A stretch of DNA of 64,000 bases, from assembly GCF_006345805.1 (NCBI RefSeq), contig NC_043017.1, positions 18,910,001 through 18,974,000 of the forward strand, read 5' to 3'. Shown here piece by piece: positions 565-60,883 of this stretch (positions are counted from its first letter, which is position 1; each line of letters starts with the position of its first letter). The notes below the pieces were generated by a model, which worked only from the letters and a program-made list of their open reading frames with translations, was not told the origin of the DNA and did not search any database. A program made the translations under genes and the position numbers. The DNA is from Octopus sinensis (lineage: Eukaryota).

Positions 565-1680
565 ATGGAAAATACATTATGTGAAAATCCATTTACACTT
601 CAGGCAGAGTCTGAAAATATGAATTTTGCAAATGAAATGCCAAAAGAGACAGGAAAAAAGTCAAATGAGTGTGATATCTGTGGTAAATCATTTGCACGCA
701 GAAACTATTTAACTGCTCACAAACGTATTCATACAGGGGAGAAGCCACATCAGTGTAATATATGTGGTAGAGCTTTTATTTCAACTGGTCACTTAACTAC
801 TCATATACGTACACATACAGGAGAGAGGCCTTATCACTGTGATATCTGTGGTAAATCATATGCTCGTAGTAATCAGTTAACTGTACATAAATACATTCAT
901 ACAGGAGGTCAGCCATGCCATTGTGATATCTGTGGTAAATCTATGCCTTCAAAGAGTAAATTAACAGTACACAAACGCTTTCATACTGGAGAGAAACCAT
1001 TTCACTGTGATATTTGTGGTAAATCTTTCTCTATTAGTAGTCACTTAACTACACACAAATATATGCATACAGGAGAGAAGCCATATCACTGTGATATCTG
1101 TGGTAAATCATTCTCTGTAGGAAGTAACCTAAATACTCACAAACGACTTCATACAGGAGAAAAGCCATACCACTGTGATATCTGTGGGAAAACATTATCC
1201 GATCAAGGTAACTTAAATAGTCACAAACGTACTCATACAGGTGAGAAAAGATACCTTTGTGATATTTGTGGTAAATCGTTCTCTGATAGTAGGTCTTTAA
1301 CTGCACACAAACGCAGTCACACTGGAGAAAAGCCATATCACTGTGAAATCTGTGGTAAATCATTTGCAACCACACGTACAGTAACTGTTCATGAACATAT
1401 TCATACAAGAGACAAGTCATATTCGTGCAATATCTGTGGTAAGTCATTTCCTCGTAGTGAATCATTATTTATTCACAAGCGTATACATACAGGTGAGAAG
1501 CCATATCGCTGTGATATCTGTGGTAAATCATTCACAATATCAACCACAATATCAACTACTTTGACTACACACAAATGTAGACATACAGGGGAGAAACCAT
1601 ATCACTGTGATATCTGTGGTAAAGCATTTTCTCAAAAACGTCACTTCACTGCCCATACATCTACTCATACAGGAAAATAA
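565..1680 (+). CDS. C2H2 zinc-finger protein (ZNF1 here), 371 aa, 12 finger units, no effector domain
   Basis: Intact ORF of tandem C-x2-C-x12-H-x3-H units with TGEKP linkers. Conserved acceptor TTTCAG at 324-325; exon 1 lies upstream of the window. Finger 11 carries a 4-aa insertion. Confidence 0.95.
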
Positions 1681-3805
1681 CTGTGTCAATATATGTTGTG
1701 CTGTAAAAAAATACCTAACCATAAATGTATTCACAGAGGGAGTTAGACAGAGCTATCTTTCTAGAGTAAATAGTTCACGTAACTACATTTAATATCTACT
1801 TGCCTGTATGATTATAATAAAAGTATTGTTTCAGAAAATAGTCATATGTATATTGTAGCTAACATATATGTGCCGAGAGATGACGAGATACAATAAATTT
1901 ACTGGATATTGTGTAAATAACTGAGAAATGAGTTCTTATAAATCACAAATGACATCACTGTACTGTTTAATTAGAAATAAAATTATGAACTATAAAAGAA
2001 AATATTTCGTTATACCATATCGGGATGTAAGTATGATGTCTTACAAAGAATCTTTGCCCTTTATACATTTAATCATGTATATACTCCAACAAATTATCAA
2101 AAATAATGAGCTTCAACAAAGAATTTCTATAGAAGGTAATTGTTTGTGTTGGCCTTAAAGTATCTTTAGTGTTTCTATATAATCTATCTTTTCTACATTA
2201 ATTCGTGCATCTGTTCTATGTTCAGTGTGAAATATTATGTACTTATCTCAATAATGGAATAGTTCATGATTTAAATAATAAAATAAAGCTAATTAAATCT
2301 ATTTCCTTGACCCGAGTTGACTGACTCTTACTTCCTAGACATTTACCTTCCAACTGATATTCTATCATTGATCACTCTTCCATCTCTGTTCTCCATTCAC
2401 TGCATTTATCTCTTTCTCCATCTCTATCCAGCTGCTACTCTTCTTTCACTCTTGCATACATTCCTACAGATTCATCCTATCCATTTCTCTGTGCCATTCC
2501 TCTTATATTGCGCTTCCTATAACCTGACAGATCTGACATCTTCACCACCATCTTGCTTTTGTAATTGGAGTAACCATTTGTCTACCCTACTGCAAGACAC
2601 CTATCCCACATTTAAGGGTTCTTGTCTCTTGAGGTATATTGTGACAATATAAAATCATCCATGTACACTCTTTATAATGGTTGTTGTTATGAAGGGTATC
2701 TGGCTGTAGAAACAATGCCAGAGCTTGGCACTATCCTCTGGTTCAACAGCTTCTTTCAAACCATCCAATTCATGTCAACATGTAAATGAGATGTTAGATG
2801 ATGAGTATTTCAGCAAAATAATAAACATTATGGATCTTCAACAAAGAATTGAAACATATAAATCTGGAGAGAGTGTTGGGATAAAATATTAGTACCCTGT
2901 GTTGATGTAGGGAGATTTGGTTACTATTTCTTGCATATTGTTATTCCTCTTTGAGGTCCATCATTTATAGTGTGAGCTAAGAATTGTCTGTTAGCTGTTT
3001 AGCATGTATCAACGCATGCACACAGAGGAAGGAAATGTATTTAAAAAGTTTCATATGTCTGAATGGAGTGAAGGAAGAGGCTTTGGAAAAAAAGTATTTG
3101 AAACAATTTTTTTTTTTTTTGTCCAGAATTGAAATCGTCTGCACATGGAATTACAAAATACAGAAATAAAGACTTGTGAGGTGACAGTGGGAATTGAAAT
3201 TTCAAAATGCTTTTGTTTTATTTATTGACATAATCATAAATTTTAATATTGAAAATAAGAATCCTAACTGCAAGGGCAAATGTCTTCTATAATTGCAGGC
3301 CAAATGGATTTGATAAATGAAACTGAAAGTGGCTTTTGTATATATGCGTTTGAGGCTTAACAGTCGCTGAAATTACATAGAATTAGCAAAATTTAAAAGC
3401 TACTAAGTTATTATTAATTTAATTAGTATATAAAATTGAAGCAAATATGAAAACAATTGGAACAAAGTTTTAAAAAAATAGAAAACTGTGTCAGCAACAG
3501 AAAAGATCTGGATTCCTTTTGATTTGCAATTTAATTTTCTTCATTATTTATTTCTTGGGGAGGGGAAATGAGTGCGATTTCTATCATCAGCCTGTAAAAC
3601 CACATTTTCTGGAGATTTGATTGACTAATGGGGTTTGGTTGAAATTTAACATCAGAGCCACTAGAAGCAGATGCAAGAAACAACTAAAACATATCGACGA
3701 CGATCGTTGAAGTTGGCTTCATTATCGGTGTTACAACATACGAAGACATTAAATCGCTGTCTTTCATCTGATTAGCATCTCATTCCGCTCCTAACATTCT
3801 ACCAA

Positions 3806-4054
3806 TGCGCATGATTAACCGGAAGTTGACTTCGACGGTCACTCATAAGATCTCAGCTTTGTATTTCTAATTAAATCGCATATAAGATAATTTACTAGCT
3901 TGACGCATAAAACGGTGAGGAAGTAATCATATCTATCTCATATCTTATAATGAATTTATCTATAATATTATACATTGTATATACGTAATGGGAGTAATTT
4001 CAGCATCCCGACCATCGTCACTGATTTACTCATTATAGCTGTGATTCATTCGAG
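3806..4054 (+). promoter_or_regulatory. ZNF2 core promoter motif (NRF1-like TGCGCATG + ETS CCGGAAGT) and non-coding exon 1
   Basis: TGCGCATG at 3806, CCGGAAGT at 3819, donor GAG|GTATTT at 4054/4055. The same module recurs before other ZNFs. Confidence 0.75.
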
Positions 4055-4263
4055 GTATTTTTGTTGATTCTTTTCTCATTCAAACGTCGTTTCTACTTTC
4101 ACAACGCAATGTTTCTATTTGATTGATCTGTCATATACTTCGCGACATTCTTGAAAACAATCAGTCTTTGAAACACAAGTTAGCACTGACGTAGCCATAT
4201 AAACAACAACATATCATTTTTCAGGCCAGAGAACTGCCACCGTCCACTATTGTGTATTCACCA

Positions 4264-4560: not shown

Positions 4561-5629
4561 AGTTGGTCCCCGCCAAACTATATCAATTTCTACCATCTGT
4601 AGGGAAATATGGTACCACTAGCGAACAGTGTTCCCGGTGCGCGCACTCGTGCATCCGCGCTAGTTAGTTAACGGGTGTTGAGGTTTACTGCTCGGATTCT
4701 GTACGGTTGATCGTATGAATTTTCTGAGCCCCCTCCCCACCCATCCGTTTATAAGCGCGCATTTTTTTCTTAATATTTGTTGAATATACATTGCATTAGA
4801 AGTATTAGACGATTTCTGTTTCACTCCTGTGACCGGGTGTTGAGGTTTACTGCTCGGATTCTGTACGGTTGATCGTGTGAATTTTCCGAGATCCTCCCCG
4901 GGTGCGGATCTACATATTAACTGTTATATTTGTTTCCATTAAATTATTAGGCACCAAAATATAGAAGTTCACATACCGAAATATTCATTTGAAAAATGTG
5001 AATCTCAGTGATGTCTTGTATTTGTGTGGTCTTGGCTATTATCAAAGACTGAAGTTCTGCTGGAATGTTCATGGTGTCCCTGATCAAAATTTTCAGGTCT
5101 CAGCCAGGCGAACCACATACAAACAGTCGCTATAGATTTCTATATGTGTAGCCATCAAACAAGATTGTACGATGTAGTTATAAGAATTAAAATTTAACTT
5201 CAAATGTTGATGTAAATGCTTATATTTACATTTCTATTTATTAACATAGAAATGTAAATTTTCCATCGTTGAGCCTCTACTTTTAAACAATCCCTATATC
5301 TTATACTATTTCTCTACTATTTCAGAAATAACAGATGGTATTGGCGTAGAAGAATTTATTTACTTCAGATTCGTCATCAATATTTCTCATCATTTAAAGA
5401 CTAAAGAATGATGTTATTCCAAATAGAAATGATTGGTGGAATGACTGAAATATTTCTTGTGAACTGAGATTATTATATTATTAACATTCTAATTTTTTCT
5501 TTCACTATCTGGAATATATTCAAGAGTGAGTTTCTGCCATCAACAGATATCAATAAACATTGAATGTGATGGAAATTTTAAAGTAGAAAATATGAATAAA
5601 ACATAGCAATTAGTGAGAAAAGAACAGTA

Positions 5630-6811
5630 ATGGAAAATACATCACGGGAGACCCCAATTAAAACAGAGTCTGAAAGCATTGATTTTCCTGATGAGATGCT
5701 GAAGGTGATGAAAAAAACATCATACCAGTGTGGTATCTGTGGTAAATCATATTCTGAAAGAGGAACATTAACTAAACACAAACGTATTCATACGGGAGAG
5801 AAACTATATCAGTGTAATATCTGTGGTAAAGCATTCATTTCAAGTAATTACTTAACTATTCATATACGTACACATACAGGAGAGAAGCCTTATCAGTGTG
5901 ATATCTGTGGTAAAGCATTTGCTCACAGTTCTCATTTAAAAGTCCATAAATACATTCATACAGGAGGTCAGCCATGCCATTGTGATATCTGTGGTAAATC
6001 TATGTCTTCAAAGAGTAAATTAACAGTACACAAACGCTTTCATACTGGAGAGAAACCATTTCAGTGTGATATTTGTGGTAAATCATTCTCCATTAGTAGT
6101 CACCTAACTACACACAAATATATGCATACAGGAGAGAAGCCATATCACTGTGATATCTGTGGTAAATCATTCTCTGTAGGAAGTAACCTAAATACTCACA
6201 AACGACTTCATACAGGAGAAAAACCATTTCACTGTGAAATCTGTGGCAAAACATTATCTGATCAAGGCAACTTAACTAGTCACAAACGTATTCATACAGG
6301 TGAGAAACGATACCTCTGTGATACTTGTGGTAAATCATTCTCTGATAGTAGGTCTTTGACTGCGCACAAACGCAATCACACTGGAGAAAAGCCATATCAC
6401 TGTGAAATCTGTGGTAAAGCGTTCAGCACCACACGTCAAGTAACTATTCACCAACACATTCATACAGGAGACAAGTCATATTCATGTGATATTTGTGGTA
6501 AGTCATTTCCTCGTAGTGAATCATTATTTGTTCACAAACGCATACATACAGGTGAGAAGCCATACCACTGTGATATTTGTGGTAAATCATTCACAGTATC
6601 AACTACTTTGACTACACACAAACGTAGTCATACAGGAGAGAAACCATATCACTGTGATACCTGTGATAAATCATTCACTACAACAAGTTACCTAACTAAG
6701 CACAAACTCATTCACAGGCGAGATATGCCATATCACTGTGATATCTGTGGTAAAACATTTTCTCAAAAACGTCACTTCACTGCTCATACATCTACTCATA
6801 CAGGAAAATAA
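5630..6811 (+). CDS. C2H2 zinc-finger protein (ZNF2), 393 aa, 13 fingers; hybrid of ZNF3-like 5' part and ZNF1-like 3' part
   Basis: Intact ORF. Inferred intron 4055-5325 (GAG|GTATTT ... TTTCAG|AAAT). N-terminus and fingers 1-3 match ZNF3; fingers 6-end and the 3' flank match ZNF1. Confidence 0.95.
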   Translation: MENTSRETPIKTESESIDFPDEMLKVMKKTSYQCGICGKSYSERGTLTKHKRIHTGEKLYQCNICGKAFISSNYLTIHIRTHTGEKPYQCDICGKAFAHSSHLKVHKYIHTGGQPCHCDICGKSMSSKSKLTVHKRFHTGEKPFQCDICGKSFSISSHLTTHKYMHTGEKPYHCDICGKSFSVGSNLNTHKRLHTGEKPFHCEICGKTLSDQGNLTSHKRIHTGEKRYLCDTCGKSFSDSRSLTAHKRNHTGEKPYHCEICGKAFSTTRQVTIHQHIHTGDKSYSCDICGKSFPRSESLFVHKRIHTGEKPYHCDICGKSFTVSTTLTTHKRSHTGEKPYHCDTCDKSFTTTSYLTKHKLIHRRDMPYHCDICGKTFSQKRHFTAHTSTHTGK

Positions 6812-8434: not shown

Positions 8435-8538
8435 AGGATACAACATATCGACGACGTTCGAACTTGCGAACACTCTTAATCGGTATTTTGGGTAGTCGTG
8501 TGTGATTTCGTCTGTTTAGCATCCGAACATTCTACCAA

Positions 8539-10285: not shown

Positions 10286-10844
10286 AAAATAGACATTTCT
10301 TCATTGACAATATATATATATATATATATATATAGATCAACATGTAATTTTACATAATTACCGTGTGTTGCTATAGTTTGTATATATGTAACCATGAAAC
10401 AAGATTGCACGATGTAGTTATAAGAATTAAAATTTAACTTCAATCGTTTATTTCTATTTATTAACATAGAAATGTAAATTTTCCACCGTTGAGCCTCTAC
10501 TTTTAAACAATCCCTATATCTTATACTATTTCTCTGCTGTTTCAGAAATAACAGATGGTATTGGCGTAGAAGAATTTATTTACTTCAGATTCGTCATCAA
10601 TATTTCTCATCATTTAAAGAATGATGTTATTCCAAATAGAAATGATTGGTGGGATGACTGTGAAATATTTCTTGTGAACTGAGATTATTATATTATTAAC
10701 ATTCTAATTTTTTCTTTCACTATCTGGAATATATTCAAGAGTGAGTTTCTGCCATCAACAGATATCAATAAACATTGAATGTGATGGAAATTTTAAAGTA
10801 GAAAATATGAATAAAACATAGCAATTAGTGAGAAAAGAACAGTA

Positions 10845-12194
10845 ATGGAAAATACATTACGGGAGACCCCAATTAAAACAGAGTCTGAAAGCATTGATTT
10901 TCCTGATGAGATGCTGAAGGTGATGAAAAAAACATCATACCAGTGTGGTATCTGTGGTAAATCATATTCTGAAAGAGGAACATTAACTAAACACAAACGT
11001 ATTCATACAGGAGAGAAACCATATCAGTGTAATATCTGTGGTAAAGCATTCATTTCAAGTAGTTACTTAACTATCCATATACGTACTCATACAGGAGAGA
11101 AACCATATCACTGTGATATTTGTGGTAAAGCATTCGCTCACAGTACCCACTTAAGTGTCCATAAATACATTCATACAGGAGGGCAGCCATACCATTGTGA
11201 TATCTGTGGTAAATCTATGTCTTCAAAGAGTAAATTAACAGTACACAAACGCTTTCATACTGGAGAGAAGCCATTTCAGTGTGATATCTGTGGTAAAACG
11301 TTTTCTATAAGTAGTCATTTAACAACTCACAAATATATGCATACAGGAGGGCAGCCATATCACTGTGATATCTGTGGTAAATCATTCTCTGCAAATAGCC
11401 AATTAACTATACACAAACGCATTCATACAGGAGAAAGGCCGTATCACTGTGATATCTGTGGCAAACCATTGTCTGACCCACGTAACTTAAATAGTCACAA
11501 ACGTATTCATACTGGAGAGAAACGATATCTCTGTGATATTTGCGGTAAATCATTTTCTCACAGTGGACATTTAACTGCTCACAAATGCATTCATACAGGA
11601 GAAAAGCCATATCCCTGTGAAATCTGCGGTAAATCATACTCTATCAAAAGTGAATTAACAGTTCACAAACGCATTCATACCGGAGACAAACCTTATTCCT
11701 GTGACATCTGTGGCAAGTCATTTCCTCGTAGAGAGACGTTACCTATCCACAAGCGTATTCATACAGGTGAGAAGCCATATCACTGTGATATTTGTGGTAA
11801 ATCATTCACAATATCAAATAACTTAACTATCCACAAACGCAGTCATACAGGAGAGAAACCATACTGTTGTGATATCTGTGGTAAATCATTTACTACAACA
11901 AGTGGTTTAACAACACACAAATACATTCACACAGGAGTGAAACCTTATCACTGTGATATCTGTGGTAAATCATTCACTGTTACAAGTAACTTAACTACAC
12001 ATAAACACATTCACACAGGAGAGAAACCATATCACTGTGATGTTTGTGGTAAATCCTTCACTTCAACAAGTAACTTAACTAAACACAAACGCATTCACAC
12101 ACGAGATATGCCATATCATTGTAATATCTGTCGTACATCATTTTCTCAGAAACGTCACTTAATGGCACATGTGTCTATTCATTCAGAAGAATAA
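10845..12194 (+). CDS. C2H2 zinc-finger protein (ZNF3), 449 aa, 15 fingers
   Basis: Intact ORF. Inferred intron 8854-10545 (donor variant GAA|GTATTT). Confidence 0.95.
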   Translation: MENTLRETPIKTESESIDFPDEMLKVMKKTSYQCGICGKSYSERGTLTKHKRIHTGEKPYQCNICGKAFISSSYLTIHIRTHTGEKPYHCDICGKAFAHSTHLSVHKYIHTGGQPYHCDICGKSMSSKSKLTVHKRFHTGEKPFQCDICGKTFSISSHLTTHKYMHTGGQPYHCDICGKSFSANSQLTIHKRIHTGERPYHCDICGKPLSDPRNLNSHKRIHTGEKRYLCDICGKSFSHSGHLTAHKCIHTGEKPYPCEICGKSYSIKSELTVHKRIHTGDKPYSCDICGKSFPRRETLPIHKRIHTGEKPYHCDICGKSFTISNNLTIHKRSHTGEKPYCCDICGKSFTTTSGLTTHKYIHTGVKPYHCDICGKSFTVTSNLTTHKHIHTGEKPYHCDVCGKSFTSTSNLTKHKRIHTRDMPYHCNICRTSFSQKRHLMAHVSIHSEE

Positions 12195-13620: not shown

Positions 13621-13859
13621 TGTTAGTGTGTGTGCCATCCTATGACATATATATAGCATAAACACTGAAGACATTGGAAATGTGTTAAATTTTTATACAC
13701 ATATAACTTTTGTTTAAATACAAGTTTAACTTTTTAACATAAGAGATAAATAGTTTTACTATGTACCAATATATATGTGAAAATAAAAATACATAGATAT
13801 GTTTTGTATTATAGTTTTACTGAAAATATATTGGTATATGTAGTCACAAGGTAAGTTTG

Positions 13860-15814: not shown

Positions 15815-17002
15815 ATGGAAAATACATTAAGTGAGACACCAATTACGATTAAGACAGCGATTGAAAGCATTGATATTTCTGACGCGATGTCAAAAGAGAT
15901 GAGAAAAACTTCAAACCACTGTGACATCTGTGGTAAATCATTTTCTCTAAAGAAATCTTTAACTGCTCACAAACGTATTCATACAGGAGTGAAGCCATAT
16001 CAGTGTAATATCTGTGGTAAAGCTTTTTATCGAAGTACTTACTTAACTATTCACATACGCACTCATACAGGAGAGAAGCCTTATGACTGTGATGTCTGTG
16101 GCAAATCATTTGCTCGAAGTCATCAGTTGACTGTACATAAATACATTCACACAGGAGGACAACCTTGTCATTGTGATATCTGTGGTAAATCTATGTCTTC
16201 AAAGAGTAAATTAACAGTACACAAACGATTTCATACTGGGGAGAAGCCATTTCAGTGTGATATTTGTGGTAAATCATACTCTATTAGTAGTCATTTAACA
16301 TCTCACAAATATTTTCATACAGGAGAGCAACCATATCACTGTGATATTTGTGGTAAATCTTTCTCAGCAAATAGTCAGTTAACAATACACAAACGCATTC
16401 ATACAGGAGAAAAGCCATATCATTGTGATATCTGTGGTAAATCATTGTCTGACCCACGTAACTTGAGTAGTCATAAACGTGTTCATACAGGAGAAAAACG
16501 ATATCTTTGTGATGTCTGTGGTAAATCATTCTCTCGAGGTGGACATTTAACAGCTCACAAATGCACTCACACAGGAATGAAGCCACATGCCTGTGATATC
16601 TGTGGTAAATCATTCTCTACAAGTCCTGAATTAACTGCTCACATACGCATTCACACAGGAGACAAGCCTTATTCATGTGATATCTGTGACAAGTCATTTT
16701 CTCGTAGAGAAGCATTATCTGCTCACAAACGAATTCATACTGGTGAGAAGCCATATCACTGTGATATCTGTGGTAAATCATTCACGACATCAACTAACTT
16801 AACTAAACACAAACGCAGTCATACAGGGGAGAAGCCATACTGTTGCGATATCTGTGGTAAATCATATACTACAAGAAATAGCTTAACTGCACACAAACAC
16901 ATTCACACAGGAAAGAAACCATATCACTGTGATGTCTGTGGGACATCATTTTCTCAGAAACGCAGCTTAAAGATGCACGTTTGTATTCATTCAGAAGAAT
17001 AA
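15815..17002 (+). CDS. C2H2 zinc-finger protein (ZNF4), 395 aa, 13 fingers
   Basis: Intact ORF. Promoter motif at 15417, donor at 15648, candidate acceptor at 15730-15731 (84-nt intron). Confidence 0.95.
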
Positions 17003-24016: not shown

Positions 24017-24955
24017 ATGACGGAAAACAAAATGTGTGAAAAAAAAGCCCAATATAATACACAGTGGCAAAGAATGAATTTCCCCAATGATATTAAGAAA
24101 GAGAAGGGGAATATATTATATCAGTGTGACATCTGTAAAAAGTCATTCTCTTATAAATGTAACTTTACAACTCACAAACTTATTCATACAGGAGAGATGC
24201 CATATGACTGTGATATGTGTGGCAAATCGTTCTTTCAGAGAAGTGAGTTAACTGCACACAAACATATTCATATAGGAGATAAGCCACATCACTGTGATAT
24301 CTGTGGTAAATCCTTCTCTACAAATAGAAACTTAACTTACCATAAACGTATTCATACAGGAGAGAAGCCATATCACTGTGATATCTGTGGTAAATCATTC
24401 TCTCAAAGTGGTAACTTAACTTACCATAAACATACTCATACAGGAGAGAAGCCATATGACTGTCGTATCTGTGGTAAATCATTCTTTCGAAGTAGTGCGT
24501 TAACTGTACACAGACGTATTCATACAGGGGAGAAACCATTTCGCTGTGATATCTGTGGTAAATCATACTCTGTAAGTAGTAACTTAACTTACCATATGCA
24601 TACTCATACAGGAGAGAAGCCATTTGACTGTAATATCTGTGGTAAGTCTTTCTTTCGAAGTAGTGAGTTAACTGTACACAAACGTATTCATACAGGAGAG
24701 AAGCCATATGTCTGTGATATCTGTGGTAAATCATTCTCTCAACTTAATCCCTTAACTAAACATAAACGTGTTCATACAGGAGAGAAGCCATATGACTGTG
24801 ATATCTGTGGTAAATCATTCTCTCGATGTAGTCACTTGACTAGGCATAGACATATTCATACAGGAGAGAAACCACATGACTGTGATGTGTGTGGTAAATC
24901 ATTTGCTGAGAAAAGTCATCTAAAGAGACATATCAGTGTTCATCATGATGTGTGA
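24017..24955 (+). CDS. C2H2 zinc-finger protein (ZNF5), 312 aa, 10 fingers
   Basis: Intact ORF. Conserved acceptor at 23736-23737; no cassette promoter or exon 1 recognised upstream. Confidence 0.93.
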   Translation: MTENKMCEKKAQYNTQWQRMNFPNDIKKEKGNILYQCDICKKSFSYKCNFTTHKLIHTGEMPYDCDMCGKSFFQRSELTAHKHIHIGDKPHHCDICGKSFSTNRNLTYHKRIHTGEKPYHCDICGKSFSQSGNLTYHKHTHTGEKPYDCRICGKSFFRSSALTVHRRIHTGEKPFRCDICGKSYSVSSNLTYHMHTHTGEKPFDCNICGKSFFRSSELTVHKRIHTGEKPYVCDICGKSFSQLNPLTKHKRVHTGEKPYDCDICGKSFSRCSHLTRHRHIHTGEKPHDCDVCGKSFAEKSHLKRHISVHHDV

Positions 24956-27694: not shown

Positions 27695-28975
27695 ACCTCC
27701 CGGAAGAATCCAACTCTGCGCATGCGTGCTGGAGATTTCCAAGATGGCGTCACTACAAGGCTCCCCCTCGAGTGCGGAAGTACAAAACAGAAGATTGTAG
27801 TGGCTCCAGAAAACAAGATGGTAGCCAATCACACAGAAGATATGGCACACAATATGACAAGCAAATAACTGTGAATGCAAAAAAAAAAAATAGCATGCAC
27901 AAAGTTGTTTTTTTTTTTTTCTTAACAAAATGTCCAAGAGTAAAACATGAAATGGACCAGGAGAGAAAAGAGAATGTCAAATATAAATTGTTTTTGAAAG
28001 TTTCTTGGGCCAGTGAACAGTTCTGCCTGATCTGGTAACAAGGTTTGCTCGAGGCACTTTTCAACGATGAAGGTGGCGTAGGCGTTGGTAGAGGCAAAGG
28101 TACCTGTGTAGGTGAATGTATTGTCAAAGGTGCATAGGTGGGTGTGGCAGCGGTGTCTTCAAAAGATGTAGACATCTCAAAATATGCTTTTTTTTTAGTT
28201 GGTCTCCGTATGACCATTCATCACGATGGTGAAAACTTTGGGTGTGCTAGAAAGCACACGGAAAGGTCCTTTATAAGGATAAACAAGAGGTCCCTTGACA
28301 GAGTCGTCTCGAATAAAAACATGCGACCAAGAGTCCATATCTGGTGGGACATGAGAGGGTGGAGATTGTTCCCGGGAAACCATGGGTGGAAGATTTGAAA
28401 AACAAGTACAAAGTTTGGTGACATGAGACGCCGGATCATGGAGCTGTGAAGTGTCTGGCACCAACATCGTACCAGGTAATGCCAGTGTGGTACCATACAG
28501 TAGCTCTGCAGAAGAAAAACCCAGGTCTGCCTTGACAGCAGTACGACAACCAAGAAGCACAATTGGCAGAAATTCAGTCCAAGACTGTGGATCTGCAAAG
28601 GCACGTAGAGTGGCCTTGAGCTGTCTATGGAACCGTTCAACTAATCCATTAGAAGCTGGATGGTAACTGGTTGTGTGAATGTGATGCACACCTAGAATAC
28701 GTGACAATTCACGAAATAAAGAAGCTTCAAACTGACGTCCACGATCGGTAGTTAATCTGGACGGAACTCCGAAATGGGAAATCCAGTTTGAAACAAAAGC
28801 TCGAGCAACAGACTCAGCAAAAATATCTGCTATTGGAATAGCTTCTGGCCAACGGGAGAAGCAATCAACACAGATTAAAAGATAAGACCCGCGACTCACA
28901 AGCCATGGTCCAACCAGATCAATGGGGACATAGACACATGGTGTCTGACATGTGATATGTTGCACCAAAGTTCAA
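27695..28975 (-). mobile_element. Ty3/Gypsy LTR-retrotransposon fragment: integrase core, PPT and truncated 3' LTR
   Basis: ORF 28195-28968 has IDLVGP, TTDRGRQF and SNGLVERFHRQLK (full DDE triad). PPT GAGGGGGAG at 27769-27761; the LTR begins TGTAGTG at 27757 and is cut after ~60 bp. Confidence 0.92.
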
Positions 28976-35667: not shown

Positions 35668-38169
35668 TTACTTTTCTGTATGAAGACGTCTATGTTTAGT
35701 TAACTGAATATTTCTAGAGAATGATTTCCCACAGATATCACAGAGGAACAGCTTCTCTGCTCTATGAACATATTTATGATTGTTGAAAGTACTTCTTTGA
35801 GAGAATGACTTCTCACAGATATCACACTCATATGGCTTCTCACCAGTATGAGTGCGTTTGTGAATAGTTAAGACACTACTTTGAAAGAAGGAATACCCAC
35901 AAATATTACATTGGAATGGTTTGTCTCCTGTATGAGTGCGTTTGTGTACAGTTAATGCATTTCCATGAGAGAAAGACTTACCACATATCTCACAGTGATA
36001 TGGCTTCTCTCCTGTATGGACACGCTTATGAGTAGTTAAGACATAAGACCGGGAGAATGATTTACCACAGATATTGCAGGCATATGGCTTCTCTCCTGTA
36101 TGGGTACGTTTATGCAGTGTCAAGACATTTTTTTGAGAAAATGATATACTGCAGACATCACAATGGTATGGCTTTTCTATTGTATGAATACGTTTGTGCA
36201 TAGCTAAAACACTTTTCTGCGTGAATGATTTACCACAAACATCACAGTGATGTGGCTTAACTCCTGTATGAATGCGTTTGTGTATAGTTAAGTCATAACA
36301 CCGAGAGAATGACTTGCTGCAGATATCACAGTCATATGGTTTCTGCCCTGCATGGATGAGTTTGTGCAGATTTAAGATATTTTTTTCTGAGAATGATTTA
36401 CCACAGATGATACAGTGATATGGTTTCTCTTGTGTATGTATACGTATGTGATTGGTGAGATTACCTCTGCGTGAGAATGTTCTCCCACAAGTATCACACT
36501 GATACGGTCTTTCTCCTGTATGAATGCGTTTGTGTATAGTTAGGGTGATTCTATGTGAAAATGATTTACCACAGACATAACACTGATATGGTTTCTCATA
36601 TGGATTAGAATGCTTGGGTCTAGTTATATCACAGCTTCCAGAGAATGATTTTTCCCTTGTAGGAATGCATGTGTGTTTTGTTAAGTCTTTATTTTGAGAA
36701 AATGATTTACCACAAATATTGCAGTGATATGGCTTCTCTCCTGTATGAACGTGTTTGTGCTTAGTTAAGCTACCACTTTCAGAAAATGATTTACCACAGA
36801 TATCACAGTGATATGGCCTCTCACCTGTATGAACACGCTTGTGGGGAGCTAAGGAACTACTTTCCGAGAAGGATTTACCACAGATATCACAGTGGTATGG
36901 TTTTTCACCTGTATGAACACGTTTGTGTTTAATTAAGTCACTACTTGTGGAGCAAGATTTACCACAGATATCACAGTGATACGGTTTCTCTCCTGTATGA
37001 ATACGTTTGTGCTTAGTTAAATCTCCACTTTGAACGAATGATTTACCACAGACATTACAGCAATATCGTTTTACTCCATTATGAATGTCTTTGTGTCTCA
37101 TTAGGTTACTCTTAATTGTAAAGGATTTACCACAAATATCACAGTGATATGGTTTCTCCCCTGTATGGATACTTCTGTGATTAGTTAGGCGACATTTTTG
37201 TGAGAATGATTTTCCACAGATATCACAGTGATATGGTTTCCCCCCTGTGTGGAGCCTTATGTGAATAGTTAGTTCACCTTTTTGAGAGAATGATTTATGA
37301 CAAACATCACAGTTATATGGCTTCTCTCCTGTATGTATGCGTCTGTGAGTAGTTAGGTTACATTTATTTGTGAAGGATTTACCGCAGATATCACAGTGGT
37401 AAGGCTTCTCTCCTGTGTGAATATTTTTGTGAGTATTTAGGTGACTTTTTTGAGAGAATGATTTACCACAAACATCACAGGGATATGGCTTCTCTCCTGT
37501 ATGAATATTTCTGTGAGTTGTGAGGGAAGATTTTAAAGAAAATGATTTACCACAAATTTCACAGTGGTATGGCCTCTCTCCTGTGTGAACCCGTTTGTGT
37601 ACATATGAGGCACTTCTATGAGAAAATGTTTTACCACAAATATTACAATGGTATGGCTTCTCTCCTGTATGGGTATTTTTGTGAGTAGTAAGGGGACTCT
37701 TTCGGGGGAATGATTTACCACAGATATCACATTGATATGGTTTCTCTCCTGTATGAGTACGTCTGTGAGTAGTGAAGGTACCACTATCAGAAAATGATTT
37801 ACCACAGATATTACAGTGATATGGCTTCTCACCTGTATGTATACGTTTGTGAGTGGTTAAGTTTCGTGCTTCAGAAAAGGATTTACCACAGATATCGCAG
37901 TGATATGGTTTCTCTCCAGTATGAGTTCGTATGTGTATAGTTAAGCTACCACTTTCAGAAAATGATTTACCACAGGTATCACAGTGATATGGTTTCTCTC
38001 CTGTATGAATACGTTTGTGAGTAGTTAAGTTTCCTGTTTCTGAGAAAGATTTACCACAGACATCACAGCTATATATTTTTCCTATTTTTTTTAGCATCTC
38101 ATTAGGGAATTCAACTGTTTCATATTCTGTTTTAATTTTAATTGGTTTCTCACAGATTTCATCTTCCAT
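35668..38169 (-). CDS. C2H2 zinc-finger protein (ZNF6), ~833 aa, 27 intact plus 2 broken finger units
   Basis: The ORF track starts at a GTG (38214); the ATG homologous to the other genes ([15 protein letters not shown]) is at 38169. Acceptor at 38509-38508, donor at 40036. Confidence 0.93.
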
Positions 38170-39164
38170 TTTATTCTTTTCTGGTTCTTGTATTTTCTTA
38201 ATTATTTCTACCACTATAATTCTAACTAATGTGATACTTGATATCTGAAGATTCTACAAACTCCTTTATAGATTTGTTCGATTTCAATTAGAACGCAACT
38301 GATCTTGAACATATTCCAGACAGTCAAAGAGTGGAAGTTTATAATGATCTCAGGTCATACGAAATATTTTATACCAATTCCATAATCTTGTTTAGAGACA
38401 CAAGATTAATTTAATTCTGTATAGCATCTTCCTTTACTTTTTAAAAGATGTTAATTATTGATGATACATTTGAAGAAATACTTTTATGCCAATGTCATCT
38501 GATATTTCTGAAATAAAGAAACAGTATAAGATATAGGGGATACTTAAAAGTAGAGGTCAACAGCGGAAAATTTACTTCATCTCTATATTGATGAACTGTG
38601 AATAACATTTACATCGACGATTAAACTTTAAACTTTAATTGGTTATTAAAATGTCATCAAACAACTGTTACATATACCTTATATATGCTAAACTAAATAA
38701 TGGTGCACATTTGTCCTGTCCAGAGGATCGATCGTTATTGGTTATTTGTTATTCAGCCCCAGGTCACTTTGTATTGAGCAGACGAGTTGTTGGTCAATAT
38801 AAAGATCCTCACCCGTTAACGAAAAAAAAAAAACGGGTTGATCTCAGGAATTCTATGAATTTTATGGCAGTTTAAACAAAATGAAAAATTTGACGAACGT
38901 ATAAGAAACGTCAATGGTTTACATAAAATACCAAAATAAAATCGAAATATTGTTTACTACAGTTCCTATTCTACAATGTACAAAAATATAAGCTATAAAC
39001 ATCAACATTGGATAACTTCAACCCTCAAATAATTTTTTTTCTTCATGGAATATATAACACGCATGAATATGATATGCAAAACCACATTAAAAATATAAAT
39101 CCAAAACTGAGAGAAAAGAAAACGAAAAAAGAGGAAGAAGGAAAGGAAAAGAGAGAAAAAAAAA

Positions 39165-43327: not shown

Positions 43328-44737
43328 TCAGCTATCTAGTTTTCCTCCTGTATGAATATACTTGTGTCGAGTTAAGTTTCCAGTCTGTGAGAACGATTCA
43401 CCACAGATATCACAGTGATATGGTTTCTCTCCTGTGTGAATGCGTATGTGAGTAGTTAAGTCACCACTACGAGAGAACGATTTGCCACATATACTACAGT
43501 GATATGGCTTCTCTCCTGTATGAATGCGCTTGTGTTTAGTTAAAGTACTACTTTCAGAGAAGGATTTACTACAAATATCACAGGGATATGGTTTCTCACC
43601 AGAATGCAAATTTTGGTGAGTAAGTAACTGACTACGTCTAGAGAATGATTTAGCACAGATATCACAGTGATATGGTTTTTCTCCTGTATGAATGCGTTTG
43701 TGTGCTGTTAAGATACCTTTTCGAGAGAAAGATTCGCCACAAATATTACAGTGATATGGCCTCTCCCCTGTGTGAATGCGTTTGTGTTTAATCAAGGTAC
43801 TACTTTCAGAGAATGATTTACCACAGATATCGCAGTGATATGGCCTCTCTCCTGTATGGATATATTTATGAGTAGCTAAGTGACTACTTCGAGAGAATGA
43901 TTTGCCACAAGTGTCACAGCGATGTGGTTTCTCTCCTGTATGAATGTGTTTGTGTGTACTTAAGACACCTTTCCGAGAAAATGATTCACCACAAATATCA
44001 CAGTGGTATGGTTTTTCCCCTGTATGAATACGTTTATGAGGCATTAAATCACCACTTTTGGAGAATGATTTACCACAAACATCACAGCAATATGGCTTCT
44101 CACCTGTATGTATACGCTTGTGAGTAGTTAAGTGACTACTTCTAGAGAATAATTTACCACAGATATCACAGTGATATGGCTTCCCTCCTGTGTGAATATG
44201 TTGATGAGTAGTTAAATGTCCTGTTACAGAGAATGATTTACCACATATATCACAATGATATGGTGTTTCTCCTGTGTGAATACGTTTGTGAGTAGTTAAA
44301 GGACTCCTTTGAGAGAATGATTTACCACAGACATCACAACAATATGGTTTTTCTCCTGTATGAACACGTTTGTGTATAGTTAACTGATCCTTCTGAGAGA
44401 ATGATTTGCCACAAATATCGCAGTGATATGGCTTCTCTCCTGTATGAATACGTTTGTGTCTAGTTAAGTCACTACTTCCATAGAATGATTTACCACAAAT
44501 ATTACATATATATGGTTTCTCTCCTGTATGAATGCGTCTGTGAGTAGTTAGGTTACATTTATGGGAGAATGACTTTTTACAGATATCACATTCGTGTGTT
44601 TTTCCTTTCTCTTTTAGTCTTCTAACAGGAAAATCATTTCCTTTAGACTCTGTTTTATATTTACTCTCATTCTCACATAATTCATTTTCCATAATATATT
44701 TTCTTTCACAACAGTATACAGATATTTTTCTTCTCAT
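43328..44737 (-). CDS. C2H2 zinc-finger protein (ZNF7), 454-469 aa, 15 fingers
   Basis: Intact ORF with in-frame ATGs at 44737 and 44692; the latter (MENELCE) is homologous to the family start. Conserved acceptor at 45002-45001. Confidence 0.94.
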
Positions 44738-50870: not shown

Positions 50871-51946
50871 TTATGAAACCATCTTTATGTGTACATTAAT
50901 TATAAAAGCTTTCAATTTGTGTGTGTGTCACGAAAACATATTTACTGTCAGAAAACCACAGAAATACGATATTGTGCAGGTGTGGCAATGTGGGTGAGTT
51001 TGCTTCCTAATCACACAGCTTTGGGCTCAGTTGAACTGTAGTTCTTAGGGCAAGCACTTTCCACAACAGCATTGTACCATTAAAAGCCTTGGGATCTGAT
51101 TTTGTAGATGGAAACTGAAAGAAGCTGATGCTATCATAGAAGATGCTTCCCCCAAACTACATGGTTGTGAAGCAAAATTATTAACCACACCACCATGACC
51201 GCACCTAAAAAATTAGCAGAAAATAGTATTTGCACCTTATTTGAAAAGCCTGCCTGCAGTTTTTCCATCCCTACCACCAATGCCCCCTTTTGTAATTGAC
51301 TATATACACTCCTATATATTTCTGACCTCTGTCTCCTCCACACTGAAAGAATAGCTTTAGTCTGTAAATATATAAACTTTGCTTGCAGATTTATGATGTA
51401 ATATTAAAACAAATTTAAAAGATAAGCTTCAACTGTTAAGCTAAAAGCCATTTACAATTTGTCAGTGTAGACATGTAAAATTTCCACTGTTAAATCACTC
51501 ACTTTTAAGTATCTCTTATATCTTATATTGTTTCTTTCTTATTTCAGAATACCAGATAGCACTAGCACAAAAGAATTTTCTGCTTCAAATCCCTAAATTG
51601 TTCTCAATTTTTGAAGACTAAAGCAAGATTTTGTATAGGATTGATATATTTCTGTTCATAGATGTTTACAGTTGAATTGCTATAAAATAAGTCTTGTGAA
51701 CTGTTCTCAGTCTTGCAGTCTAGAATGTGTTCAAAGTGATTTTGCATTCTGATTAAACCAAGACAAATTTACAAGGAAGTTTAAAGTGTCTTCAGATATC
51801 CACAAATATAGTAGTAGAGACAACTGTTTGGAATATTATCTAAAACCAAAGTCATTCAAAGGAAAATAATTAGGGAAAATGAATTATGTGAGTAAAAGGA
51901 ACAATGCCTAACAGAGTCTGAAAGAATTACCTTTTGTGATGAAATT

Positions 51947-54343
51947 TTGAAAGGTACAAGAAAAATATTGTACCACTGTGATATCTGTAAAATGTCATTC
52001 ACTCAAGAAAGTAGCTTTGCAAGTCATAAATATGTTCATAAAGAAGAAAGACCATATCTTTGTGAAATCTGTAAGAAATCATTCACTAGAAATAAAGACT
52101 TGACTAAACACATGTATTTTCATAAACAAGAGAAGCCATATAAGTGCGATGTTGGTGACACATCATTCTTGCAGGAAAATATCTTAAATAAACATTGCAA
52201 CATTCGTACAGGAGAGAGACCATATCACTGTGATATTTGTGGTGAATCATTTTCTGAAAGTTGTGAGTTAACTAAACACAAACATATTCATAAAGGAGAG
52301 AAGCCATACCACTGTGATATCTGTGGCAAATGTTTTTCTCATAGTAATGCTCTAACTATACACAAACGCACTCATACTGGAGAGAAACCTTATCCTTGTG
52401 ATATCTGTGGCAAATCATTCTCTCAGGCTGGTAACTTATCTACTCACAAACGTATTCATTCAGGAGGGAAACTATATCACTGTGATATATGCAGTAAATC
52501 ATTCTCTGAACCAAGTTACTTAGCAAAACACAAAATCATTCATACAGAAGGAAAGATATATCAGTGTGATATCTGTGGTAAATCATTCTCACAAAGAAAT
52601 CTCTTAACTATACACAAACGTGTTCATACAGGAGAGAAGCCATATCAGTGTGATATCTGTGGTAAATCATTCTCTCAGGCTGGTAACTTGACCACTCACA
52701 GATATGTTCATACTGGAGAGAAACCATATCACTGTGATGTCTGTGGTAAATCATTCTCTGACCCAGGTCAGTTTACAAAGCATAAATATATACATAGAGA
52801 AGACAAGTTATATCACTCTGAATACAGTGGTAAATCATCCCCTCACAGAATTTTTTTAACCATACACAAACATCACTGTGATATCTGTAGTAAATCATTT
52901 TCTCATAAAAATGCCCTAACTATACACAAACGTATTCATACAGGGGAAAGGCCATATCATTGTGATGTCTGTGGTAAATCATTCTCTCAGACCAGTAACT
53001 TAACTATTCACAAACAATTTCATATAGGAGAGAAACTGGATTATACTGATATTTATGGGAAATCTTTCTCTAATCTGGCTCACTTAATTTCTCACAGAGA
53101 CATTCATACAGAAGAAAAGCCCTATCCTTGTAACATTTGTGGTAAATCATTCTCTCGTAGAAAAGCCTTGATTATACACACACGCAGTCATACTGGAGAG
53201 AAACCACATCGTTGTGACATCTGTGGAAAATCATTTGCACAAGTTGGTAACTTGACTTCTCACAAACGCATTCATACTGGAAGGAAGCCATATCAGTGTG
53301 ATGCCTGTGGTAAATCATTTTCTCAGATTAATAACTTAACAACTCACAAATTCATTCATAAGAAAAGGAAACTATATCACTGTGATATCTGTGGTAAATC
53401 ATTCTCTCATCTAGCTCACTTCACTTCTCACAAACGCATTCATACAGGAGAGAAACCATATCGCTGTAATGTCTGTGGTAAGTCATTTTACCAAAGGACT
53501 GCTTTAATTATACACATACGCATTCATACAGGGGAGAAGCCATATCAATGTATTATCTGTGGTAAATCATTCACTCAGGCAGGTAACTTAGCTACTCACG
53601 AACACATTCATACTGGAAAGAAACCATATTGTGAGATATGTAGTAAGTCATTTTCTGACCCAGGTGACTTCTCTAAACACAAACTGATTCATAGAAGAGA
53701 AAAGCTATATTATTGTGACATCTGTAATAAATCATTCTCTCAAAAATGCACCTTAACTGGACACAAACATATGCATAGAAGTGAGAGGCTATATGACTGT
53801 GATATCTGTGGTAAATCCTTCTCTTGTAAAAATTCTTTAACTATACACATGTGTAGTCATGCAGGAGAGACAACAAATCAGTGCAATGTATATGATAAAT
53901 CATTCTCTCAAACTGATAACTTTACTTCTCACAAACACATTCACAAAAGAGAAAAACTATATTCCTGTAATAACGACAGTAAATCTTTTTCTGTCGCAAC
54001 TGACTTAACTACAGACAAACTCATTCATACAACAGAGAAGCCATATCATTGTGATATTTGTGGTAAATCATTTTCTCATAGAAATGCCTTAATTATACAC
54101 ATACGCATTCATACTGGTGAGAAGCCATATCAGTGTGATATCTGTGGTAAATCATTCTCTCAGGCAGGTAACTTAGCTACTCACAAACGCATTCACACAG
54201 GAGAGAAACCATATCATTGTAATATCTGCAGTAAATCATTCTCTGATCCTGGTCACTACTCAAAGCACAAACTGACTCATAGTGGAGGGTTGCCATATCA
54301 CTGTAATATCTGTGGTAATCATTCTCCTGTAGGAGTCTCTTAA
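51947..54343 (+). CDS. C2H2 zinc-finger ORF (ZNF8), ~23 intact of 28 units; ancestral start lost, possibly a decaying gene or pseudogene
   Basis: Open frame of about 2.4 kb. The track start is a TTG; the homologous ATG is AGG (51872) with an in-frame TAA at 51893, and the first in-frame ATG is 51992. Inferred intron 48769-51547. A frameshift at ~54317 ends the ORF. Confidence 0.75.
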
Positions 54344-56930: not shown

Positions 56931-57836
56931 AGTGGAAGAAAGAAAAAATTACTACCACACAAACAATGATATTTTATTCCAAACAAAACATTATAATAAA
57001 TCGTCTGTTATCATTAATACGGCTTTTTGGACATCGATTTCGGTTCGTAAGTTTACTTCAACTGTTCTAAAACAGAGAAGTGCATGCTAACCTGGATTTT
57101 ACACACACAACAAAGTTTCCGGATTTTCCATAGATTTAAGTAGCTAAGAACGAACCCTAGCCACATACACAGAGATGCACAAAACACATACATGCATGCA
57201 TACACACACACATACATAACTTGCACATTATAAATTTGCATGGCTTTTCTCAAGTTTAAAATGCAACATTGTTTTTATTATGTACTTTCCAACGACCCTG
57301 CTTTGTATCTTTGTTGGAAATCAGTTTCTGATTCAGAGGAAGAATTTAAATAATTGAAAGCAGAACAGAAACATACACACCCACACACACACGTACAACC
57401 ATTATCTTTCATACACACGTACATACATACATATATTCATTGTGGAGCAGTGTTTGAGTGAATACAAATACATAGAGCTGAACCCGCTCATGCGCACGCA
57501 CGAACACCTACATACATAAATACATATAAAACACATTGTGCGAATGTGTTTCACTGTTCAAGTCATCAACAGTGTCTGTTTCACTTCTGTCCGACTTCAA
57601 AGCTAATGTCGCCTTCTACACGTCATGAAAACAAAATTAAATAAATAAAACATTTTACAAAAATTAACAGACAATCATCGCAAGTCTGAGACCAAAAGCG
57701 AGAATTGCCTATTTTTCTTCCTAATTCTGTCTGGGAGAAAGAGACAGACAGTCTACAAGTATGTGATGAATGTCGATGTCATTGACAGAATATTGTTTTT
57801 GTTACTGTGGTGCTTGTTGCGTGTCCGAAGTCAATA

Positions 57837-58125
57837 TGCGCATGTCCAACCGGATATTGACTACAGACACTTTAAGACGAAGATTACTGTAATTATACGC
57901 ATAATTAAATTACATATTTGTAAAGAAATTATTTCGCGTGAGATAGATGCTGATAGAAAGGTAATCATATTTATACATCATGTTATATATATATTTTTAT
58001 AATGTTATATATGTATGTATATAACATTATAAAAAATAAATATATATATAAATACTAATTATCGCTTCAGTAATACATTTGTCCACTATCACTGTCTTCC
58101 TGATATTGGCTGTTATTTATACGAG
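57837..58125 (+). promoter_or_regulatory. ZNF9 promoter motif and exon 1
   Basis: TGCGCATG at 57837, CCGGATAT at 57850. The exon end TACGAG at 58125 is interrupted by a SINE fragment. Confidence 0.72.
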
Positions 58126-58256
58126 GTGTACTAGGTAATTCAGCCGAGGCAGACCCCGCCTTTCATCCTTGCGGGGTCGATAAATTAAGTACAAGTCCAG
58201 TAATCGACTAGCTCCCTCCCCAAAGTTTCAAGCCTTCTTGAAAGGATTTATATTGG
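58126..58256 (+). mobile_element. SINE fragment inserted at the ZNF9 exon 1/intron boundary
   Basis: GCCTTTCATCCTT.CGGGGTCGATAAATTAAGTAC matches the 48085 SINE; it separates TACGAG from GTATTTTTTGTTG. Confidence 0.8.
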
Positions 58257-59101
58257 GTATTTTTTGTTGCTGATTTCTTGATATTATCGGTGTTTTGTTT
58301 CTTCTTTTCATTGTATTCTTTCTTTGGTTAATGTTTAGTCATAAAATTCGTGACACCCCTAAAAACAATCTTTGGTCACAAGTCTGCTCAGTCAGTACTG
58401 ACCTAGGGCTATAAAAATACCAACAGAAGAATGTTACGAACTACTATTGGGTTGCTTATATATATGTGCATGTGTGTGATATATATATATATATATATAT
58501 AAAGAGAATCAGGTGTTGCTGCGTCGTGATATATTTTCAGTGAAATTGTTTATTATTGCTAGTGGTGTCATCATACTTGTGTGTAATAATTTGAGAGTTA
58601 CGGGCCTTGATAAGGCTTTACTTTCGTCTATCTACAACTACTTTCTCTAAGCTGACATATTACACAGCTTTAGGATGTAACTGTAGTTTGAAAATATGTA
58701 TATTTGAAGTAAACCTCGATTGTCCATATAAATGTTTATATCTCCAGTTTATCAATATAGAAATGTAGTAAATTTTCCAATGCTGTGCCTACTTTTAAAT
58801 ACCCCCTTTTACTTAAACTTTCTCTATTATTTCAGAAATATTCGATGCATGGACAATATTTATCAACTTTTAAAGACTGGAGGAAGATATTGGGCTCACC
58901 AGATACAACTTGCGTGTATAAATCTATGTTTGAATTGGTGTGAAATATTTCTTGTGAACTGAGATTATCAGCAAAATTCTACTTCATTGTCTGGAATAGA
59001 CTTGGAAATATTTACAAAGAGTTTGTGGTATCTCCATACTTCAAAAACGATCTACAGTTGATGGAAATATAAACCAAAGCAGTGCTTAAGGAATAATAAT
59101 T

Positions 59102-60883
59102 ATGGAGAGTAAATTCTATGAAGAACCAATTACGATTAAAACTGAGCCACAAACAAATAATTTTGCTGATGAGATGGTGGAAGAGATACGAAAAACATCA
59201 TACAAGTGTGATATCTTTAAAAGGTCATTCTCTCAAAAAAGTGTCCTAACTACTCACAAAAGAAAACATACTGGGGAAAAGCCATATCACTGTGATGTCT
59301 GTGGTAAATCATTTTCCCAAAGAAATGTCTTAACTATTCACAAACGCATTCATACAGGAATAAAAGTATATCAGTGTGACGTATGTGGAAAATCATTCTC
59401 CCATAGTACTGCATTACGTACTCACAAACGTATTCATACTGGAGACAAACCATATCACTGTGACATCTGTGATAAATCATTTTCTCAAAGAAATCGTTTA
59501 ACTTTTCACAAAAGCATTCATACAGGGGAGAAACCATATCACTGTAACATCTGCAATAAATCCTTCTCAAATCCATATGTCTTAGCTAAGCACAAACTTA
59601 TTCATACAGGAGAGAAACCATATCACTGTGATATCTGTGGTAAATCATTTTCCCATAGTGGTAACTTAACTTGTCACAGACGTATTCATACAGGTGAGAA
59701 GCCATATCACTGTGATATCTGTGGTAAATCATTCTCTCGAAAATCTAACTTACCTAAACACAAACGCATTCATACAGGAGAGAGGCCCTATCACTGTGAT
59801 ATCTGTGGTAAATATTTCTCTCGAAATGGAGACTTGTCCAAGCATAAACGTATTCATACAGGAGAGAAGCCATATCACTGTGAGATATGTGGTAAATCAT
59901 TCTCTCAAACTGGAGATTTAACAAAACACACACGAATTCATACAGGAGAGAAGCCATACTGTTGTGATATATGTAGCAAATCATTCTCTGAAAGTAGTGA
60001 GTTAACTCGACATAAACGTATTCATACAGGAGAAAAACCATTTCACTGTAATATCTGTGGTAAATCATTTTCTCAAAATTCAGAAGTGACTAAACACAAA
60101 CGCATTCATATTGGAGACAAGCAGAATTGTACTGATATCTGTGGTAAATCATTGTTACACTCAGGTAAATCAACTGCTCAAGAATATTCAAGGGAGAAAC
60201 CATATCACTGTGATATCTGTGGTAAATCCTTTTCTGGAAGTAGTGACTTTACTAGGCATGGACGGACTCATACAGGAGAGAAGCCATTTTGTTGTGATAT
60301 ATGTGGTAAATCATTCTCTCGAAATGGGGATTTAACTAAACACAAACGTATTCATACAGGAGAAAAACCATATCACTGCGATATTTGTGGTAAATCATAT
60401 TCTCAAAGTAGTGAGTTAACAAGACACAAACGAATTCATACAGGAGAGGAACCATATCACTGTGATATCTGCGGTAAATCTTTCTCTGAAGGAAGTTTCC
60501 TAACTAGACACAAACGCATTCATACAGGGGAAAAACCATATCACTGTGATATTTGTGGTAATTCATTCACACAGAATGGTGATTTAACTAGACACAAACG
60601 AGTTCATACAGGAGAGAAACCATATAATTGTGACATCTGTGGTAAATCCTTCTCTAGAAGTAGTTACTTGACAACACACATTCGTGTACATACGGGAGAG
60701 AAGCCGTATCAGTGTGATATATGTGATAAATCATTCTCTCAAAGTAGTGACTTAAATAAGCACAAACGTATTCATACAGGAGAGAAGCCTTATCTTTGTG
60801 ATATCTGTGGCAAATCACTATCTGACACTGGCAGCTTCACTAGACACAAGGATCTTCATACAAGAGAAAAGCCTTATAACTGA
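59102..60883 (+). CDS. C2H2 zinc-finger protein (ZNF9), 593 aa, 18 intact plus 2 degenerate fingers
   Basis: Intact ORF. Promoter motif at 57837, acceptor at 58834-58835. Confidence 0.95.

Follow-up and report, generated by a model that had tools for sequence, protein, structure and literature searches.

A short N-terminal leader with signs of purifying selection in a family of Octopus C2H2 zinc-finger genes

A stretch of 64,000 nucleotides of the Octopus sinensis genome (contig NC_043017.1, positions 18,910,001 to 18,974,000 of the forward strand, RefSeq assembly GCF_006345805.1), referred to here as the window, contains nine C2H2 zinc-finger open reading frames (ORFs), Z1 to Z9, seven on the plus strand and two (Z6 and Z7) on the minus strand. 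Translation together with the upstream sequence places a homologous leader of 31-34 codons directly before finger 1 in all nine, its end lying two residues ahead of the first finger cysteine. The leader is a genuine peptide associated with the fingers at the N-terminus, seen in this analysis only in Octopus, and the codon comparisons indicate that it is under moderate purifying selection. On balance we think it probable that the leader is the N-terminal tail of one Octopus C2H2 subfamily, in which two constrained blocks act as short linear motifs for a common partner. The octopus zinc-finger expansion is among the largest outside the vertebrates. To our knowledge octopus zinc-finger proteins are without KRAB or any other known effector domain, and we know of no account of how they act once bound to DNA.

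Results

Tree lengths were computed on a fixed tree under the Hasegawa-Kishino-Yano (HKY) model. They came to 4.81 for the 5' flank and 4.59 for the third codon positions of the leader, and to 2.61 for its first and second positions, which change at 0.54-0.57 of the flank and third-position rates. The corresponding values for finger 1 were 3.59 (third positions) and 1.74 (first plus second), and unrelated sequence further upstream gave 11.6. The 5' flank is a segment of ~420-500 bp that was duplicated with every gene and can still be aligned across the window genes and in most Octopus loci with DNA; because it is homologous among the paralogues over this length, its similarity alone proves nothing about selection. 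It evolves at about the synonymous rate, as in the example ahead of Z2 (5210-5629, plus strand), and the family is therefore young enough that neutral DNA still aligns.

Under a Goldman-Yang codon model the ratio of nonsynonymous to synonymous change (omega) was 0.42 for the leader, and omega = 1 was rejected (twice the log-likelihood difference 19.0, p = 1.3e-5); finger 1 plus linker gave 0.36. The sample held 14 sequences of 33 codons, with P0122 and P0125, two of the relatives described below, left out as loci without a DNA record. Across subsets and codon-frequency models the omega of the leader lay between 0.40 and 0.44, with p = 1e-5 to 3e-3 in likelihood-ratio tests, and the eight intact window genes alone gave p = 0.002-0.003 against omega = 1. 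With ratios in this range, and with the adjoining flank changing at the rate of its third positions, the leader does not evolve like untranslated sequence, a behaviour that an earlier note on this DNA had named as telling against a functional element. Pooled Nei-Gojobori (NG86) pairwise ratios of 0.5-0.56 were replaced by the maximum-likelihood codon models, being distorted by transition bias and by the non-independence of pairs, and the near-neutrality suggested by raw p-distances alone was overturned by the tree-based rates and the codon models.

The leader was also divided into blocks of 7-11 codons, each compared with omega = 1. The block ENELCEN gave an omega of 0.25 (p = 0.013), the 11-codon block holding the psi-K-x-E motif 0.72 (p = 0.31), DFPDEML 0.35 (p = 0.016) and the basic tail 0.53 (p = 0.27); in finger 1 the framework gave 0.29 (p = 1.4e-6) and the helix contact positions 0.55 (p = 0.11). 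With blocks as small as these, the concentration of constraint in MEN(E)LCE(N) and DFPDE(M/I)L is suggestive rather than decisive. Column by column, 17 non-redundant leaders conserve E3 (17/17), E8 (16/17), F22 and K33 (15/17 each) and K29 (13/17), in genes separated by about 0.8 substitutions per synonymous site.

The leader methionine is a real start. An in-frame stop lies 6-87 nt upstream of the leader ATG in the nine window genes and in the six Octopus relatives with DNA (15/15), and the start context is good, with a purine at -3 and a G at +4 in 14/15 each (8/8 and 7/8, respectively, among the eight window genes that start with ATG), so that no in-frame upstream coding exon can join. The seven annotated Octopus models that carry the leader all begin at its methionine; the ORF of P0124 begins seven residues earlier. 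A second in-frame ATG is present in Z7 at 44737 (minus strand), 15 codons upstream of the leader methionine, and resembles the extension of P0124; the leader of Z7 may accordingly not be at the extreme N-terminus.

Two conserved motifs were seen in the flank. Between 250 and 350 nt upstream of the leader ATG, a pyrimidine-rich tract ending in TWTTTCAG is present in seven of the nine window genes (318, 5318 in the example flank of Z2, 23730, 38515 and 45008 on the minus strand, 51540 and 58828) and in two further O. sinensis genes (locus L002, 9680 and, on the minus strand, 1904), with the near-variants TGTTTCAG in Z3 and CATTTCAG in the O. sinensis gene of locus L001. The tract resembles a 3' splice site, in which case the 5' untranslated region (UTR) would contain an intron; alternatively it could be a core promoter of the TATA-plus-initiator kind. 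A second motif, TCTTCAG|ATATCAA, follows an invariant AGTTT about 60-120 nt upstream of the ATG (502, 15725, 23935, 38251 and 44814 on the minus strand, 51789) and is possibly another acceptor or a regulatory site.

Relatives of the leader were sought with a profile of 36 positions (A2), built only from the eight intact window leaders and scored against 1.84 billion representative proteins. Ten matches were obtained at E <= 0.001, eight of them to zinc-finger proteins (E = 1.3e-10 to 2.1e-4) and all eight N-terminal, starting at residue 1 except in P0124, where the match starts at residue 8. The other seven come from O. sinensis, O. bimaculoides and O. vulgaris, and P0124 from a 540-bp contig of assembly GCA_024449705.1. 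The two remaining matches, to repeat proteins and internal, were treated as chance. No squid, cuttlefish or other mollusc was among the matches, although a profile this short has little power in a collection of such size. The earlier note had taken the leader to be a shared family element, and zinc-finger ORFs of three Octopus species are indeed headed by it. Several of these leaders (P0122, P0124, P0125, P0126 and P0128) have two cysteines in C-x5-C spacing (LCENQVKC), at alignment columns 7 and 13; the window leaders keep only the first, the second being replaced by Thr or Ile.

At the O. sinensis loci the leader begins uninterrupted ORFs of 591, 472, 456 and 398 amino acids (L001, 10001-11776; L002, 10001-11419; L002, 244-1614 on the minus strand; L003, 10001-11197), where the RefSeq models have 200, 137, 400 and 112 amino acids with fingers spliced out. 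It appears that introns were wrongly called within the finger arrays, and protein databases therefore under-represent this leader-bearing family. An exact look-up of the eight intact window proteins in a collection of 15 billion found none of them, which says little given the mis-spliced database models; mis-splicing probably explains the absence. A word-index search with residues 1-40 of Z2 and Z7 returned no candidates, and in a search with full-length Z9, which was dominated by long zinc-finger proteins of vertebrates, the first 120 matches included no cephalopod. Full-text literature searches returned no description of such a leader, and a 2025 survey of cephalopod C2H2 genes mentions no N-terminal motif, leader or effector, KRAB appearing there only as vertebrate background and in the references. 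The leader is thus undescribed in the searchable literature and belongs with the lineage-specific N-terminal finger-associated sequences.

A hidden Markov model of the leader, run on the six-frame translation of the window, matched exactly these nine leaders and no other place, a pattern that far exceeds chance. On the plus strand, the leader of Z1 (565-663, 33 codons; gene 565-1680) reads TLQAE and has no psi-K-x-E. The leaders of Z2 (5630-5722, 31 codons; gene 5630-6811) and of its recent duplicate Z3 (10845-10937, 31 codons; gene 10845-12194) read MENT(S/L)RETPIKTESESIDFPDEMLKVMKKTS and contain IKTE at 5657-5668 and 10872-10883, respectively. In Z4 (15815-15913, 33 codons; gene 15815-17002) the E is lost, leaving IKTA. 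The leader of Z5 (24017-24118, 34 codons; gene 24017-24955), MTENKMCEKKAQYNTQWQRMNFPNDIKKEKGNIL, is the most divergent of the nine and has YNTQ at the site and a separate IKKE at 24092-24103. In Z9 (59102-59200, 33 codons; gene 59102-60883) the motif is P-IT-IKTE-P (59135-59146). On the minus strand, Z6 (38074-38169, 32 codons; gene 35668-38169) has IKTE at 38125-38136 and truly begins with the ATG at 38169, the GTG listed as its start at 38214 stemming from a bacterial start-codon rule, and Z7 (44597-44692, 32 codons; gene 43328-44692) has YKTE at 44648-44659. The leader of Z8 (51872-51970, plus strand) is a disabled relic, since its ATG is replaced by AGG and its codon 8 (51893-51895) is TAA; it reads CLTE and has no KTE. 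The array downstream of the relic is open for 815 codons (51896-54343), with 23 canonical fingers in about 28 units, and Z8 would be either a recent pseudogene or a gene translated in some other way.

Pfam scans of the nine proteins returned C2H2-finger families only, with no match to KRAB (PF01352), SCAN, BTB/POZ or ZAD (E <= 0.01, and <= 1e-5 in a second scan). The earlier note had likewise reported no KRAB, SCAN or BTB domain, and its assignment of IKTE to Z2, Z3, Z6 and Z9 and of YKTE to Z7, with KTE lost from Z1, Z4, Z5 and Z8, is exactly what the translations give. Its statement that all nine genes start with a homologous leader holds for the homology but not for the start in Z8.

In composition the leader is rich in Glu (16%) and Lys (14%). 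The net charge of residues 1-25 is -1 to -5 in 14 of 15 leaders (+1 in Z5), and that of the last eight residues 0 to +4, mostly +2 or +3. When the leader was modelled with two fingers in AlphaFold2, residues 1-29 had a predicted local distance difference test (pLDDT) score of 33-41 and no secondary structure, and the fingers one of about 78; the leader is accordingly predicted to be disordered. No relative of the leader was found in the PDB (best E-value 0.39). Comparison by eye of the DFPDE(M/I)L core with eh1, CtBP-binding and other known docking motifs did not support any of them.

The window genes carry 10 to 27 canonical fingers each. G+C content along the window is 33-43%, and no Rfam family was matched in it. 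Between Z5 and Z6, in the most G+C-rich part (0.43), lies a retroelement remnant (28198-28968, minus strand), marked by its integrase core domain (Pfam rve, E = 2e-11). The recent duplicates Z2 and Z3 are 93.5% identical over 757 bp of flank and coding sequence (5126-5880 against 10367-11095), with additional blocks 1.4-2 kb upstream that are 97% identical, and Z3 exceeds Z2 by two fingers. In Z1 a 12-bp tandem duplication in a recognition helix (1534-1560; TISTTISTT) makes one finger longer than the canonical spacing. Finger 1 of Z9 (59207-59218) has Phe in place of its second cysteine (CDIF), and the same gene has one degenerate internal unit (60125-60202); the finger adjoining the leader is probably non-functional in this otherwise intact gene.

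Discussion

It is suggested here that the leader, some 33 residues long and sharing its exon with the finger array, would have been copied at each tandem duplication along with about 450 bp of 5' flank. One of its two blocks, MEN(E)LCE(N), would open the protein, and the other would be the acidic-hydrophobic core (D/N)-F-P-D-(E/D)-(M/I)-L, joined to finger 1 by a K-E-x-(G/R)-K link. Through these blocks, arrays of differing DNA specificity may be given one shared partner, perhaps a cofactor or else a factor acting in processing, stability or import, by a logic that would be that of KRAB, ZAD and FiNZ in other lineages. The psi-K-x-E lysine, present in some lineages only, would lie in a loosely constrained spacer between the blocks, where any SUMOylation would be a modulation within the subfamily rather than the mechanism common to all. 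An effector role for the leader is plausible. Several points weigh against this proposal. An omega of 0.4 means that constraint is weak by the standard of a functional motif, and it roughly equals the value for the whole of finger 1; the sample is small, and the tree was derived from the same data as the codon fits; the AlphaFold2 alignment was shallow (13 rows); and the invariant E at residue 2 could reflect the +4 G of the start context, or N-terminal processing, rather than the binding of a partner.

The most serious alternative, which we consider unlikely but by no means negligible, is that the leader has no protein-level function of its own and was inherited as the sequence that connects a good start codon with finger 1, staying open since the fingers need to be translated and looking similar since the family is young. 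The flank can be aligned over about 450 bp and its raw divergence (p = 0.37-0.49) is near the leader's own (0.37), the three codon positions of the leader have similar raw distances (0.36, 0.34 and 0.40 for positions 1, 2 and 3), amino-acid identity among leaders is only 31-50%, and indels of one or two codons are tolerated, all of which speak for this alternative. However, codon models that allow for transition bias reject omega = 1, for the window genes alone as well as for the full sample, first and second positions change at little more than half the rate of the flank and of third positions, the constraint is patchy rather than even, with its two blocks at 0.25 and 0.35, and E3, E8, F22 and K33 are nearly invariant in spite of the synonymous distance. 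That the protein begins ahead of the leader, with an exon not seen here that supplies a classical effector domain such as KRAB, is very unlikely. Both flank motifs could be read as acceptors for such an exon, but the in-frame stops of all 15 genes lie downstream of the two candidate acceptors, the ATG context is favourable, and the annotated models start at the leader methionine, P0124 alone having its short extension. Least credible of all is a decayed N-terminal zinc finger. A cysteine stands at position 6 in 11 of 17 leaders, several Octopus members have a second one six residues on, and the core has F-x4-L spacing; we rejected this identity, as profile-profile comparison in hhalign against the window's own fingers gave a probability of 0.1%, the leaders contain no His to serve as ligand, and the Pfam finger models begin only at finger 1.

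A further reading, which we regard as distinctly improbable, makes the leader a mini-effector that works through its psi-K-x-E lysine, where attached SUMO would recruit SETDB1-type silencing to wherever the fingers bind, for example in transposons. The likeness to SUMO consensus sites is closest in Z2, Z3, Z6 and Z9, where IKTE stands in an acidic region predicted to be disordered, in which the lysine would be accessible. Strict [IVL]-K-x-E occurs otherwise in P0122 (IKCE, two columns earlier) and P0125 (VKCE), both from O. bimaculoides and the only two Octopus relatives with the consensus. A proline-flanked 'synergy control' form of the SUMO motif is known, and the motif of Z9 has prolines on both sides. 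At the aligned site the lysine is kept in 12 of 17 leaders, and [IVLMF]KxE is found somewhere in 7/17 leaders against 2.5 expected from shuffles (nominal P = 0.007, uncorrected for shared descent). In the IKTE-bearing lineage the putative site would be canonical and accessible, and is followed by acidic residues as in the charge-dependent forms among the variants of the psi-K-x-E consensus (PMC3395311).

Predicted consensus sites, however, frequently go unmodified (PMC3395311), and composition alone gives each leader an 8-30% chance of [IVLMF]KxE. The rest of the aligned site is kept less well than the lysine, with T in 10/17, E at +2 in 9/17 (Q in 5/17), and I, V, L, M or F at -1 in only 4/17, Y or C being commoner before the lysine than I, V or L; strict psi-K-x-E at the aligned site is found in 4/17. 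Octopus relatives have YKTH, YKTQ, YKMQ, VKCI, VKCK or RKSE there, and Z1 and Z4, both intact, lost the motif within a clade where Z2 and Z3 keep it. The block that holds the motif is the least constrained of the leader and cannot be distinguished from neutral. SUMOylation would thus be at most a subfamily feature, and not what the whole family conserves. The earlier note had proposed a KRAB-free effector module with SUMO at its core and had expected KTE to be enriched among intact genes. A module is a reasonable idea for a shared and selected N-terminal element, but SUMO as its core does not agree with the weak conservation of the motif, nor are intact genes enriched in KTE, for Z1, Z4 and Z5 are intact and without it.

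KRAB in the tetrapod KRAB zinc-finger proteins, which binds TRIM28 and through it SETDB1, is like the leader an N-terminal module common to variable arrays in tandem clusters among transposons, but it folds into a domain of about 75 residues, is encoded on separate exons and has a Pfam model, whereas the leader is half as long, predicted to be disordered and without a KRAB match. The ZAD of the insect ZAD-ZNFs is also a lineage-specific N-terminal partner of expanded C2H2 families; it differs in having a zinc-binding dimerisation fold, about 90 residues long and containing four cysteines, where the leader has at most two cysteines, predicted disorder and no Pfam match. SNAG (Snail, Gfi, Insm) is a short unstructured repressor peptide that has to stand at the very N-terminus of C2H2 proteins and docks a cofactor. 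It may be compared with the leader as a functional analogy only; no resemblance in sequence was seen by eye, and SNAG is ancient and widespread whereas the leader was seen only in Octopus.

The closest likeness is to FiNZ, the 28-residue Glu-rich N-terminal sequence of cyprinid zinc-finger genes, a family tied by knock-down data to the repression of transposons (Wells et al. 2023, PMC10547256). As a short, conserved, Glu-rich N-terminal sequence of a multi-finger protein the leader is of the same kind, which does not in itself indicate homology. Both are at the extreme N-terminus, of similar length (28 against 31-34 residues), without similarity to known domains and lineage-restricted, and each heads a tandemly expanded C2H2 family without KRAB. 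FiNZ lies on its own exon upstream of the finger exon, however, whereas in octopus a single uninterrupted ORF covers leader and fingers, both in the window and elsewhere in O. sinensis, and any likeness between a fish and an octopus lineage would be convergent. The start-site morpholino used for FiNZ (PMC10547256) has the reverse complement ATG GCG TTT ATT AAA GAG GAG, or MAFIKEE, so that the first residues of FiNZ contain I-K-E-E and it also opens with psi-K-x-E, a point in favour of the SUMO reading; SUMO is not mentioned in that paper. It could be imagined that short acidic N-terminal leaders with a SUMO-acceptor lysine have repeatedly served to arm lineage-specific zinc-finger expansions independently of KRAB, with the octopus leader, in the part of its family that has I-K-T-E and acidic residues after it, and FiNZ as convergent examples. 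We hold this to be a long shot; if true, animals without KRAB would connect their variable arrays to heterochromatin by means of SUMO instead of a TRIM28-like adaptor.

For the octopus zinc-finger genes themselves, a shared leader under selection is a simple marker by which one subfamily can be found and correctly annotated. Used as bait or fused to Gal4, this one short peptide would uncover the partner of many genes in a single step, in the way that FiNZ served for zebrafish, and it offers a concrete way to decide whether SUMO or another partner does the work.

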